Shown piece by piece: positions 53,201-62,200 of a stretch of 64,000 nt of DNA. The stretch spans positions 4,216,001 through 4,280,000 of the forward strand of contig CM035358.1 in NCBI GenBank assembly GCA_020137815.1. Direction: 5' to 3'. The notes below the pieces were generated by a model. The model searched no databases. It saw only the letters and a program-made list of their open reading frames with translations, and was not told the origin of the DNA. The position numbers were made by a program, and so were the translations under genes. The stretch comes from Hormiphora californensis. Taxonomy: Eukaryota; Animalia; Ctenophora. Numbering within the stretch: position 1 is the stretch's first letter; each line of letters starts with the position of its first letter.

Positions 53201-56200
53201 TGATTTGTTGCCACGTATCCCCATCTTTCTCTCTCGATCTTTTCTCTCTCCCCTAGTTTTGCAATTTTGCAATCGAGACAATGTCTCGATCTTACTGATG
53301 TCATCAGTAAGACATGTCTCGACTATAAAACAAAGCTCTTTTTGGGGTGACATGATCCCGAAATGATATAATAGTCGTGTGGTTAATTTTCTCTTCTCCC
53401 CCCTTAGCGAGGCTCACTCACGGTTCTACGCCGCTCAAATCGTCCTAGCATTTGAATACCTACATAACTTGGATATTGTATACAGGTAAGAATAATCAGA
53501 CGGCGGATATATGAAATCACTCAGAATCATTCACATGGTATCACTCTTTCACTTTATTTTTCACTCACTCAAACTCAAGCACACTCACTCACTCACTCAC
53601 TCACTCACTCACTCACTCACTCACTCACTCACTCACTCACTCACTCACACTCACACTCACACTCACACTCACTCACACTCACTCACACTCACACTCACTA
53701 ATTTCACCCAGAGATCTCAAGCCAGAAAACACTGTTATAGATCTACAAGGATACGTCAAGGTAAAAAGATCGATCAAACTCCGTAAAGTTTGTTTTCTAT
53801 TATCTATTCTACACTTAACAAAGTGAAACGAGTAATATCAAGTTGGATAAATGTTTGTACGTGTCCGATCTCTATTTCTGCACTTACACACATACATACA
53901 GGTAGCAAGCAAGGAATTATAGCATTCTGTCGAAATTTTGTAATATAGGGAATATTGGGAATCGAATGTATCTCTCACAGCTCATCTAGTATATGTTTCT
54001 CTCCATCTCTGGTGTAGTTTGTCATCCTATTGATCGTTTGGTGTGCGGACTCTAGTGCTACACTCTAAGTGGACTCTATATCTAAATTTAGATTTAGATA
54101 AAGAGTCCAAATAAGTCTAAACTCTAGGAGGACTCTATATCTAAAAAGTCTACACAGGGCGGACTCTTTATCTAAAAAGTCTAAACAAAGTGGACTCTAT
54201 ATCTACATAAATCTAAATTAGATATAGAGTCCGCCTTGCGCTGCGAACTCGAGATTTCGGCCGTTAGGCCGGAAACGAGAGTTTGCTCTACCCTATACTA
54301 ATTTAGAAGTGTTAGGGCCGTTATTGTGGTTTAAAGTTAGTTGGGTTAGTGTATGGGTTAGTTTTGGGTTGAAGATTAGATTTAGGCAGATCCTTGGGGT
54401 GCCCAAATGTACTAAGGACTTCTATTAAAATCTAAGGGCGGATCTATTATCTAAGAAGCTATGGGGACTCAATTACCAACTTTCTTGGTAAAATCTGACG
54501 TACGATAAAGAGTCTTTAGATTGACGCTTGGATTAGATGAGTCCGTTAGCATGAGTTCGTCACAATCCATCTGATCCATCCTCTCTTATTCTTTCTCCTC
54601 TCTTCTCTCTCTCTCTCTCCTCTTTCCTCCCGTTGTACTTTCTCATGCTTTTACTCTCTTTCTCTCTTCTATCCTTCGTTCTCTCTCTCTCACTCTTCCT
54701 CTGCCCTCTCTCTTTCTCTCTTCTCTCTCTTCTCTCTCTGCTCTCGTGCTCTCTCCAACACACTCCGAATTCAGTGGTATTAGCATGCTTTGTTACAATG
54801 ATCTGTGACTTTAATAAACATAGATTGCTTCGCTACTCCGATTTCTGTTTTGGTAAAAAAACATACATCACTTGGACCTTGTCTCCAACTTTCCTTCTTT
54901 AATACAGCCATCTGCCGCCATCTATTTATCTTGAAGATGGTGGCATAACAATGGCCATATTTCCATGGTACACATGACGTCACGAAATATTATTCATGAC
55001 GTTGTAATGTTGTAATGACTTTATCACAATCCATGATCCATCCTCTCTCTCTCTCTCTCTCTCTCTCTCTCTCTCTCTCTCTCCCTTTCCCCCTGTTGTT
55101 TCTCATGCTTTTACTCTCTTTCTTTATCCTTCGTTCTCTCTCTCTCACTCTATCCCTCCCTGTCTTTATCTCTCTTTCTCTCTTCCTCTGCTTAGTGTGG
55201 TCGTTAGTCCAATCCATCTGCAGTGTGTTTGTATGTGCGTGTGACAAGACTCCTGTCTCAAAACAAGATCATCTTCTCTCCAAACTTTCTCTCTCTCTCC
55301 CTCTCTTTCTCTCTCACTCTCTCTTCCACTCTCACTCTCTCTTCCACTCCATATAACTCTCACTCCCTTTCTATCTCTCATTCTACCTTTCTCTCACTCT
55401 CCCATACTATTCATTAAACATCTTTCTCTCCCATATCATTTCAAACTTTCTCCCTCTCGCATCATGTCTCCTGGAGCACTTTCAATGGTACACACAAACA
55501 AATCAAATCAACTTCGCTCATAGGTATCATGTTACAAGTGCCGCACACACACACATACACACACACACACACACACACACACACACACACACACACACAC
55601 ACACACACACACACACATACACACACACTTCTTCAATCATATTCTATTGCTACAAAATATTCAAGTTAGTTCAGCTAACTTCATTTTGTTATCTTGGTGA
55701 TCCCGATAGAGTGAAAAGTGAACCAGTAGTGTATATTTTATTACAACCATAATATAACAATGAGTCAATATGTAATGCTGTAATTCTTGCACAGAGGGGT
55801 ATATTGCAATATACTCTGAGTACTGAGTAGGCTACTCAATAATCTAAAAAAGTGATAGGTTGACAGGTTGAATGCATACTGGGATAGTCTGTGAAGTGTG
55901 TGTACCCCGATTTGTGGGATGAAAATTCCATTTCCGGCCCGGGTGCCGCGTCACATCCATTCGATTGGTACAGTTTAGGGAATCAGGGTATTCATTAATA
56001 ATCTACGACATTCGTTTGTCTTTCAGCTGTTCGAGGAACTGGCGATTCTTTTATGCTAGACAGTGGTCGACTGTATCAAGTGACAAATCACTGAAATGGC
56101 TTCTCGAGCTTATGGCAGATTGCTCTCTCTTTCTCTCTCTCTCTTTCTCTCTCTCTCTCTCTCTCTCTCTCTCTCTCTCTCTCTCTCTCTCTTTCTCTCC

Positions 56201-59200: not shown

Positions 59201-62200
59201 CACTGCAAAGTTATTATTCGTTTTCTCCTTTTTAGGGATTTGAAACCTGAGAATCTACTAATCGACCAAACAGGATATCTAAAGGTAAGAAATCGTCAAA
59301 ACTCAAAATATACGGTATATGTCCGCATTCCGCACGATGGCACTGTTGGTAAGTGTCAAAAACTGTCAAGAAACCCCAATCTGTCGAAATCCTGTTTTTA
59401 TAATTAATTTTTTGAGGAGGGATATTTTCTCCTCGATCCTTCTCTCTCTTTCTTTCTCTTTCTCTTTCTCTCTCTCTCACTCTCTCTACCCCCCTCTCTC
59501 TCACACACACTCTCTCTCTCTCTCTCTCTCTCTCTCTCTCTCTCTCTCTCTCTCTCTCTCTCTCTCTCTCTCTCTCTCTATCCTATCTTACCCCCTTTGG
59601 CCTTTCTGTTTCTCACACTACTACTACGAAAAATCAATTAGTTTCTACGTAAGCCATCGGAGAGTTCTTTTGATAGAGATAAGAGGGAGATAGAGAAACC
59701 GATAGATGATATCTAAGCGATACCGATAGAGATAGGATATTGAGAGGGGGGAGATAAATTTCATGGATTATCAATCCTGACATTGGTGGTGGTTTACCGT
59801 ATTTGGTTAGATTACTAGCGGCGAGGAAGTAAATCAAGACTATTATATACATGTGAGAGAGAGAGAGAGAGAGAGAGAGAGAGAGAGAGAGAGAGAGAGA
59901 GAGAGAGAGAGAGAGAGAGAGAGAGAGAGATAGAGAGTGAGAGAATATTATTTGCTCGGTAAGGACTAGGGTAATGGAAAGGGTGGGGACATGGGTGCGG
60001 TGGAGAGAGGAATATTAAAAGTTATGAAGGAGTGAGTAATCGGTCCATAAGTTTAGCGTTTTTGATGACTTAAATTAGCTGAAGAAGAATATAGCACTGA
60101 TTTTATATCAACACCAAATTTTACGTATGCTCTGTTCTCCAATGAATTTTATGCTTATAATTTGAGCAACATATATATTACCCCTGACAAAAATAAAGTT
60201 GAGAACAACAACTAAACTGCTATTTGAATTTTGAAGGGAAATCCAACAATAATGGTGTCCAGTTGATTAGTATAGTGTCAAGGTTTGGATTCTAACCATG
60301 CTTCATTTTCTGAGAGATACTGAGAATGTACATGAATTACAATTGCACATGCAATGCTAATTGAACCGGTCCTTGCCTCTAGACAGTACCAAAATATTAT
60401 GAGGCTAATAGAAGCTTAAGGAGGCTCCAGTGTACAAGACATCTAACGAGTGGCTACTATAGGAGCCCCTTTATAGGTCATACGAGCTCGTCTAGAGATG
60501 ATTTGGACACTCCATGAGCTCTATATCTATGCACGGATCTTTGTCACTCTGAACGTAATATGAGGTCGTCGTTCAATATTGCTGTAACTGGGGTAAAGTC
60601 TCATTAGCTTCCAGACGTCCCGTTTCATATTATCTTCACCCGCCTACATCAGTGCAAATTACTTAGAGCCTCATAGAGGGTCCAAATCCCTTTCTGCGAG
60701 CCCCGTATGACCTACTTAGTAGGTGTAATGTCAAAGCTAACAGGCATGTTAGAGTAGATGAAACAGAGAGAATAAGAGGGGCAAGGAGCAAATATAAGAT
60801 TGGTAAGAGGAAATAAACATTCCCAAAGATGACGAAGAGCTTAGAGAGTTCCATTTATGCACGTTTCTCTGTGTGAGTACACGAGATTCTACCTCTCTCT
60901 CTCATCTGTAGCAACTCCACATCAGTCGTATATCCTAATTCGATCGAGAATGGGGGAGAGGTATCGGAAAGGGGAAAGGAGGAGGGAAAAAATAAGAGGA
61001 AAAGAGCCAATAAAAATGAGAAATTGGACACTTGAAATGAAATCACGGTTGACGGTATTAATAGGGGATGAACGGGAGTTGTTTAAATAAATGAAATGAG
61101 AACTAGAGACAGATTTAAGTTGCATTTTATTAAGGAAAATTGCCCATTTGGCGTCTGAGACAAGCGAAAGTGAAACGAAGTACAATGCAACGAGAGAGTC
61201 GAAAGAGAGAGGTAATGAGAATGTGTTTACACGCATATTTAGGGACACATTTTGTACAAATTTGTACATGTAATTATACACACGTTCTGTAGAGGGCATC
61301 AATTAATTCAGCGTTGATTCACTGAAGAAATCACATGGCGTCCAATTTAGCTCTATAACTTATTGCCCAAGCTGGGAGTAATGCTTCGTATGTGTAGGGT
61401 AGAGGAGATGGATTGCGCGGGGTTCGTAACATTATGTAAAGTCTACTATTGTTATTGTATCGGACTCTTCGCGCTCGACAACAACGCGCACCAACCCAGT
61501 GCTCCAAATCTCGGCTGTCATGACTCAACGCAATTCTTCTGTCATAGACCGTTTTGATTCAGGTGACGTTTAATAATTTAAAAATCATTTCCCCCTCACC
61601 AGGTTACTGATTTCGGGTTTGCAAAACGGGTACGAGGAAGGACGTGGACGTTATGTGGAACACCCGAGTACCTCGCACCAGAAATCATCCTGAGCAAGGG
61701 TTACAACAAAGCTGTGGATTGGTGGGCCCTGGGTGTCCTTATCTATGAAATGGCTGCCGGTTATCCTCCCTTCTTTGCAGATCAACCAATCCAGATTTAT
61801 GAGAAAATCGTCTCCGGCCGGGTATGTGTAACAGGACTAAGGAAGGGGTAGATATAGATAGGAGTTTTAGAAAGATAGGACCCTGGTTCTATTCCCGGTC
61901 AAACCCAGATGTTTTTTATTTTATTCTCTATTTATTTCTAGCTCAGATTTTATTACTGATTGAGCACTAAATCATTTAACTCCTTTTAGGTACGGTTCCC
62001 GACTCACTTTACGCAAGATTTAAAGGATCTTCTGAGGGCACTCCTTCAAGTAGACTTGACGAAGCGATACGGTAATCTAAAGAATGGTGTTTGGGATATT
62101 AAACAGAACCGATGGATGCAGAGTATAGACTTTATTGCTGTTTACGAGCGAAAGGTAGGTCATGACTGTTATTATTTCAGAATTTATCGTGTCACTTGGG

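Follow-up and report, generated by a model that had tools for sequence, protein, structure and literature searches.

A candidate mutually exclusive catalytic-loop exon pair in the PKA catalytic-subunit gene of the ctenophore Hormiphora californensis

Exon swaps inside the kinase domain are familiar from JNK (exons 6a/6b) and p38alpha (CSBP1/CSBP2), where they yield isoforms that differ in substrate or inhibitor behavior. For the catalytic subunit of PKA (PKA-C), internal alternative cassettes termed A1 and A2 were reportedly described in Aplysia by Beushausen and colleagues, in Neuron in 1988 and in PNAS in 1992. The mollusc duplication is directly visible in gene models from Pinctada, Mytilus, Mya, and Biomphalaria, which wrongly string both cassettes together. 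An earlier note on the DNA studied here had described the Aplysia-type cassette as longer than the ctenophore one, and the mollusc models agree, with 42-aa units and ENLL in both copies. Vertebrate PKA-C exon lengths include 127 nt and 96 + 123 nt. Across the PRKACA/B family, exon lengths and phases are identical throughout, and the PKA-C gene of the sponge Amphimedon carries an additional intron within exon 6 (Søberg 2013, PMC3625193).

Against this background, we analyzed a 64-kb stretch of the Hormiphora californensis genome (hereafter, the window). Its sequence and translation reveal a complete ten-exon gene that is, on this basis, a PKA catalytic subunit of the PRKACA/PRKACB type. All features lie on the + strand. 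Two alternative first coding exons, 1a (50217–50256; 13 aa plus 1 nt; donor gtattt) and 1b (50324–50378; 18 aa plus 1 nt; donor gtaatt), were read from sequence and translation; they share phase 1, both start with Met-Gly (a putative myristoylation site), and both fall outside the tblastn match of exons 2–10 to two PKA-C query proteins. Tblastn and inspection of the sequence placed exons 2 (50789–50850; 62 nt), 3 (52189–52317; 129 nt; glycine loop), 4 (52809–52907; 99 nt), 5 (53013–53095; 83 nt; 27 aa plus AG), and 9 (61990–62154; 165 nt), together with the coding part of exon 10 (62967–63092; stop TAA), which closes the AGC C-terminal tail in an F-x-x-F motif. Exon 6 (53408–53485; 78 nt) encodes 26 aa plus the AG of Arg165. 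Exon 8 (61603–61821; 219 nt) opens with GTT ACT GAT TTC GGG at 61603, ends in VSGR with its last base at 61821 rather than 61824, and is 95–97% identical to animal PKA-C representatives. The core motifs typical of a PRKACA/PRKACB-type AGC kinase are present in the translation, and the exon lengths are those of the family: 62, 129, 99, 83, 78 + 49 (=127), 219, and 165 nt.

The 49-nt component of this series occurs twice. As the earlier note had described, two exons that agree in length and phase, each flanked by separate AG/GT splice sites, lie between exons 6 and 8. Exon 7a (53712–53760) supplies the third base of Arg165 plus 16 aa and has the sequence cacccag/A GAT CTC AAG CCA GAA AAC ACT GTT ATA GAT CTA CAA GGA TAC GTC AAG/gtaaaa; exon 7b (59236–59284) encodes the canonical 16 aa and has the sequence ttttag/G GAT TTG AAA CCT GAG AAT CTA CTA ATC GAC CAA ACA GGA TAT CTA AAG/gtaaga. 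Exon 6 ends in TAC AG/gtaaga, such that the split codon becomes AGA with 7a or AGG with 7b, both encoding Arg. In a six-frame translation of the window, DLKPEN appears at these two sites only. Reading 7a and then 7b yields GFET-stop, ending translation early within five codons of 7b, and when both exons are skipped, exon 8 is read for 29 codons before a stop. An exon of 49 nt does not preserve the frame, and inclusion of both or neither leads to an early stop; 7a can therefore only replace 7b, in agreement with the mutual exclusivity that had been proposed from the reading frame. These features support 7a and 7b as a tandem exon duplicate in which the copies are usable only singly if the frame is to be kept.

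Most of the 226-nt intron before 7a is a (CTCA)n/(CACT)n microsatellite (53580–53700; families D2 and D6), and a 19-nt tandem repeat with about eight copies of ACTCCATTGATCAAACTAC (58968–59142; family D8) ends 94 nt upstream of 7b. A further repeat lies at 58387–58498. When we searched for docking/selector RNA pairings, the inverted repeats retrieved were mostly (GA)n/(CT)n microsatellites.

Comparison of the two exons bears on the age of the duplication and on the constraint acting on 7a. Of the 49 bases, 20 differ between the copies, with the differences concentrated at third positions (12 of 17, as opposed to 8 of 32 at the other two codon positions; Fisher p = 0.005), corresponding to a pS of ~1 and a pN of 0.20. 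Twelve of 17 residues are common to both, including the whole RDLKPEN loop, and when 20 substitutions were placed at random 200,000 times, no placement left five or fewer amino-acid changes. The changes at first and second positions, eight in all, spare D166, K168, P169, E170, N171, D175, G178, and Y179 (p = 0.0012). By site class alone, the test of 7a neutrality since the duplication gives only a marginal result (p = 0.03–0.06). The observation that DLKPEN codons differ synonymously while the peptide is kept, previously taken as a hint of purifying selection, is real and significant in the Fisher and random-placement tests. From saturated synonymous change alongside untouched catalytic residues, we conclude that the duplication is old and that protein-level selection has preserved 7a over most of the time since. 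No similarity is left in the sequences flanking 7a and 7b, and no copy of exon 8 was found in the intron; a weak tblastn match at 54813–54941, considered as a decayed exon 8 copy, was rejected because its best local nucleotide score was 20, below the mean of 21.8 for shuffled sequence. We likewise rejected the copying of 7a from a paralogue: 7a occurs once in the genome, and in PKA-like paralogues this region is uninterrupted by these introns and lacks Thr-Val.

Two of the residues that distinguish 7a fall within the ATP pocket. PKA serves as the reference protein kinase, in which L173 alone among C-lobe residues completes the catalytic spine on ATP. At positions 172 and 173, 7b encodes Leu-Leu, whereas 7a encodes Thr-Val (L172T, L173V), confirming the reported change at these β7-strand residues, which cap the adenine ring (PMC11616992). 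L173 is the sole C-lobe residue capping adenine, and L172 anchors it to I150; in a yeast screen, L173 was one of just two adenine-shell residues at which Ala substitution blocked viability, and L173A uncouples ATP binding from PKI binding (PMC11616992). Among 265 sampled AGC-type catalytic loops, Thr172 occurred in none and Val173 in five, and every loop had Leu-Leu, or at least hydrophobic residues, at the two positions. In the PDB, the 7a peptide was matched best by engineered L173M "PKB-like" mutants of PKA (e.g., 1xh9). Extrapolating from the L173 literature, a 7a isoform could have altered ATP, inhibitor, or substrate properties: its C-lobe adenine cap would be smaller (Val173) and its anchor polar (Thr172), and ATP binding and ATP-coupled inhibitor binding would be the properties most likely changed.

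To place the two exons in transcripts, RNA contigs were compared over 53390–58300, for which the sole informative set was one marine metatranscriptome, available as contigs. A single contig of 806 nt covers exon 6, with no mismatch. On one side, the 3' end of exon 5 forms a loose end before exon 6; on the other, the contig continues into GATTTGAAACCTGAGAATCTACTAATCGAC, which belongs to 7b. The order exon 5-6-7b establishes 7b as the copy used in RNA. Depth over 7a was zero in this data set, a value that limits abundance only, as contigs drop rare variants, and the species-labelled run, one of two runs found, returned nothing on the PKA-C gene. The splicing of 7a into mRNA, as inferred in the earlier note, is so far unsupported in this one metatranscriptome; of the junctions proposed there, exon 6 to 7b was recovered in one contig and exon 6 to 7a was absent from it. 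At the protein level, a collection of 5.8 billion proteins held no entry of 57–180 aa sharing three words with the 7a region in its open frame. A degenerate DNA pattern for 10 residues of 7a retrieved only two bacterial DAHP synthases, which are irrelevant, from JGI metagenome contigs, and a protein search with exon 8 returned solely genomic single-exon ORFs and ordinary loops. Separately, ENA metagenome contigs carry exon-8 ORFs of related taxa (P0265–P0275), one on a 120-kb contig, and stranded RNA-seq (SRR10237136) and Iso-Seq (SRR10403849, SRR10403581) of the species itself are recorded in PMC8527503.

Taken together, we place a probability of roughly 0.6 on 7a being a genuine mutually exclusive exon, of minor or cell-specific use, that replaces 7b. 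What is a single 127-nt exon 6 in vertebrates and molluscs is split here by an additional phase-2 intron at Arg165 into parts of 78 and 49 nt. The 49-nt part, corresponding to the catalytic loop, strand β7, and the start of β8, was duplicated in tandem long ago; in the favored reading, 7b is the default exon and 7a an alternative able only to take its place. A fuller version of this reading, which we advance tentatively and with some doubt, is that the exon swap gives this ctenophore a second PKA-C with a Val spine residue and a Thr anchor, deployed in a cell- or stage-specific manner, with altered ATP affinity and ATP-coupled binding of PKI or R subunits, and with an origin independent of the mollusc cassette.

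Other readings must account for the same evidence. Exon 7a could be a relic, either a former alternative exon or a luckily intact neutral duplicate, that is now unspliced, with Thr172 and Val173 as the first signs of decay. The lack of an RNA trace in the one set of metatranscriptome contigs and of a protein trace in the 5.8-billion-protein collection would fit such a state, as would a Thr-Val pair where every sampled loop is Leu-Leu or at least hydrophobic and a donor (gtaaaa) unlike the one that exons 6 and 7b share (gtaaga). However, the synonymous sites are saturated while nothing has disrupted the reading frame, either splice dinucleotide, or any catalytic residue, which leaves room only for a recent loss of use. 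The Thr172 codon of 7a, moreover, differs from the Leu codon of 7b at all three positions, which indicates old divergence and not fresh damage. Weighing these points, we consider a relic unlikely, although a recently silenced relic is the strongest of the rival readings.

A regulatory role is a further alternative, in which 7a would act mainly as a "poison" exon whose joint inclusion with 7b lowers PKA-C through mRNA decay, with no second enzyme produced. The GFET-stop product of double inclusion is what such a mechanism would use, but it has no need of a conserved peptide, and yet the 12 shared residues, RDLKPEN among them, have been kept in the face of saturated synonymous change; we regard this role as quite improbable. 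Chance resemblance is not credible because both copies share length, phase, and splice dinucleotides, in addition to 12 of 17 residues that match the kinase motif of highest conservation, in a window with no further DLKPEN in six frames. An assembly artefact is equally hard to credit, given that 20 base differences rule out a collapsed or duplicated segment. The reading of 7a as a functional alternative to 7b would make this locus a natural evolutionary experiment on the catalytic spine, in the form of a selectively maintained isoform that replaces L172 and L173. It would also represent a second independent animal case, after molluscs, of PKA diversification by a catalytic-loop exon swap, this time in a lineage that was among the first to branch off within animals. 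Should 7a prove not to be used, the locus amounts to no more than a duplicated exon in a good state of preservation.

Compared with known systems, the ctenophore gene most closely resembles that of molluscs, with tandemly duplicated exons over the PKA-C catalytic loop, mutually exclusive in molluscs and predicted to be so in the ctenophore, accompanied by alternative N-terminal exons. The duplicated units are built differently. In molluscs, the unit is the whole 127-nt exon (~42 aa, αE to β8), whereas in the ctenophore it is the 49-nt downstream half that follows the additional intron. Both mollusc copies keep DLKPENLL(I/V/L)D, and thus Leu172-Leu173, and differ mainly in αE (LAFEYLHYLDLIY versus LVLEYLHHLDIMY); the ctenophore copies differ in β7, where 7a has lost the Leu-Leu pair. 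Neither unit size nor residue content allows 7a and 7b to be treated as orthologous to the A1/A2 event, and the different unit and different changed strand point to a separate event in a lineage far removed from molluscs. From these sequence comparisons, the ctenophore duplication looks independent of the mollusc one, in keeping with what had been suggested before. A lineage-specific tandem exon duplication in the catalytic core is also present in a PKA-C model of the amphioxus Branchiostoma lanceolatum (P0190), although there the activation-loop exon is duplicated and not the catalytic-loop exon. The exchanged exons of JNK and p38alpha encode C-lobe substrate-docking segments, in contrast to the catalytic loop and adenine-capping strand of 7a and 7b. 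In the engineered L173M chains such as 1xh9, residue 173 was varied for inhibitor selectivity at the same ATP-pocket position that is changed in 7a; these are laboratory Leu-to-Met point mutants rather than splice isoforms, and none carries Thr172 or Val173.

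The PKA catalytic-subunit (PKA-C) gene is complete in the window. Tblastn with two PKA-C proteins, combined with direct reading, placed all exons on the forward strand: two alternative first exons with Met-Gly starts (1a, 50217-50256, 40 nt; 1b, 50324-50378, 55 nt), exons 2 (50789-50850, 62 nt), 3 (52189-52317, 129 nt), 4 (52809-52907, 99 nt), 5 (53013-53095, 83 nt), 6 (53408-53485, 78 nt), 8 (61603-61821, 219 nt) and 9 (61990-62154, 165 nt), and the coding part of exon 10 with the stop codon (62967-63092, 126 nt). Between exons 6 and 8 lie two 49-nt catalytic-loop copies, 7a (53712-53760) and 7b (59236-59284). 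Their coordinates, length, ends and phases matched those described in the earlier note exactly, and the exon anatomy of the pair is confirmed. In each copy, the first base completes an Arg codon begun by the AG at the end of exon 6, the last three bases form an intact Lys codon that precedes exon 8 (start 61603), and the encoded peptide has 17 residues including the split Arg. The flanks read ...cacccag and gtaaaa for 7a, and ...ttttag and gtaaga for 7b; in six-frame translation of the window, DLKPEN occurs in these two exons only. The proposal that including both copies or neither breaks the frame was borne out by translation, as 7a followed by 7b gives GFET-stop and exon 6 joined straight to exon 8 meets a stop after 29 codons. 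Exon 6 and either copy add up to 127 nt (78 + 49), the length of the undivided exon 6 in other animals. Exon lengths and phases are identical throughout the PKA-C family, and exon 6 of the sponge Amphimedon is divided by an additional intron (Søberg et al., PMC3625193). Exons 1a and 1b both end in phase 1 before exon 2, a parallel to the alternative PKA-C N-termini of other animals. The core of the spliced-leader sequence of H. californensis (published assembly: PMC8527503) has 549 copies in the genome, versus 0 for a reversed control.

Most of the 226-nt intron between exon 6 and 7a is taken up by ~120 nt of (CTCA)n/(CACT)n microsatellite (53580-53700), which is pyrimidine-/CA-rich and has many CTCAC-type branch-point-like sites. 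At 58968-59142, a 19-nt unit (ACTCCATTGATCAAACTAC) recurs in ~8 tandem copies, of which five are identical; the series stops 94 nt before the 7b acceptor and is possibly a binding array. In the introns around 7b, long (GA)n tracts alternate with long (CT)n tracts, and these microsatellites form inverted pairs that reach 138 nt with 87% complementarity (57966-58103 with 58381-58518; further pairs at 56130-56200/56354-56430 and 59510-59580/59855-59930). They might pair within the pre-mRNA, or be no more than a sign of a genome rich in repeats.

The two copies differ at 20 of 49 bases, distributed over 12 of 17 third, 5 of 16 first and 3 of 16 second codon positions (Fisher p = 0.005). Synonymous divergence with a kept peptide, as the earlier note had it, is thus upheld (12/17 third versus 8/32 first and second positions), with pS saturated at ~1 and pN at 0.20. 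When 20 random substitutions were placed on 7b, none of 200,000 simulations gave five or fewer amino-acid changes, and RDLKPEN stayed intact in 0.0045%. A stricter null, with 7a drifting neutrally since duplication and 7b still constrained, was rejected only marginally on site classes alone (p = 0.03-0.06). All eight first- and second-position changes miss D166, K168, P169, E170, N171, D175, G178 and Y179 (p = 0.0012, rising to ~0.05, partly by our own estimate, if the changes at 176, 177 and 180 are put on the 7b branch). A genome search found no further copy of 7a. Recent import of 7a from a paralogue was rejected because the PKA-like paralogues read ...YRDLKPEN(L/I)L...DFG... unbroken, without these introns and without Thr-Val. 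No similarity is left between the flanks of 7a and 7b, and no copy of exon 8 was found in the intron. We conclude that the 49-nt exon was duplicated in place long ago, and that 7a has been under protein-level constraint through most of its history. In two more PKA/PRKX-like genes of the genome (C6:5112526-5113069 and C1:5985607-5987293), intron positions around the catalytic loop differ from those here.

These patterns strongly suggest that 7a was functional over the long term, and we predict, with a probability of roughly 0.6, that it is a real mutually exclusive exon in present-day use. That 7a is instead a recently silenced relic seems less likely, although some observations fit it. Among 265 AGC-type catalytic loops in 370 retrieved proteins, position 172 was L, I, V, M or F and never T (position 173: L in 252, V in 5). 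In X1, a marine metatranscriptome run, RNA contigs compared with 53390-58300 included a single contig on exon 6 (806 nt, depth 12.5, 0 mismatches), which carries the end of exon 5, exon 6 and then GATTTGAAACCTGAGAATCTACTAATCGAC, that is, 7b; being spliced, it derives from mRNA. Of the junctions put forward earlier, exon 6 to 7b was therefore seen, whereas 7a had zero depth in the X1 contigs, from which a minor isoform may have been dropped because the data are contigs. Against a dead exon stands the constraint on 7a, which would be compatible only with a recent loss of use. The same constraint on the 7a peptide makes it very improbable that 7a is a poison exon, a role that the GFET-stop of the joint transcript would otherwise suit.

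Short X1 contigs within the 7a-7b intron (54045-54373 and 57448-57641) match imperfectly and have dissimilar ends, and one of them extends into TTAGGG-like repeats; rather than exons of this gene, they seem to be dispersed repeats or to come from other organisms. In JGI metagenomes, a 10-residue 7a-type pattern retrieved bacterial DAHP synthases only, and the open frame through 7a, used as a protein query, had no match among candidates of 57-180 aa. Single-exon ORFs from ENA marine metagenomes (P0265-P0275, P0014; one on a 120-kb contig) share the exon-8 boundaries (…Q|VTDFG…VSGR|V) at 95-100% identity and indicate that several related taxa are present there.

L173 is the sole adenine-capping residue from the C-lobe and is tied to I150 of helix alphaE through L172; alanine at position 173, one of two such adenine-shell residues, blocks viability in a yeast screen, and L173A is one of several mutations by which the synergy between ATP and PKI binding is uncoupled (PMC11616992). 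In the PDB, the 7a peptide is matched best by PKA chains, some of them engineered L173M variants. With Thr172/Val173, the enzyme would still have a beta-branched hydrophobic cap, but a less bulky one next to a polar residue; nucleotides might then be expected to bind more weakly or differently, and ATP-dependent inhibitor binding to change.

Exon duplication recurs elsewhere in PKA-C. Mollusc models from Pinctada, Mytilus, Mya and Biomphalaria (P0155, P0160, P0169, P0186) carry two 42-residue cassettes in series, with two catalytic loops; these are annotation errors exposing a mollusc-wide cassette pair, the Aplysia A1/A2 arrangement. The earlier note's point that the Aplysia cassette is longer holds, as the mollusc unit is a 42-residue exon. 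There the whole exon is duplicated, both copies retain ENLL and helix alphaE holds most differences, whereas the ctenophore pair duplicates a 49-nt sub-exon that differs in beta7 and does not correspond to the same event. Because unit size and site of differences disagree, the two duplications are best read as convergent. In amphioxus (Branchiostoma lanceolatum PRKACA model P0190), a different exon is duplicated, and its two tandem activation-loop copies suggest a separate mutually exclusive pair.
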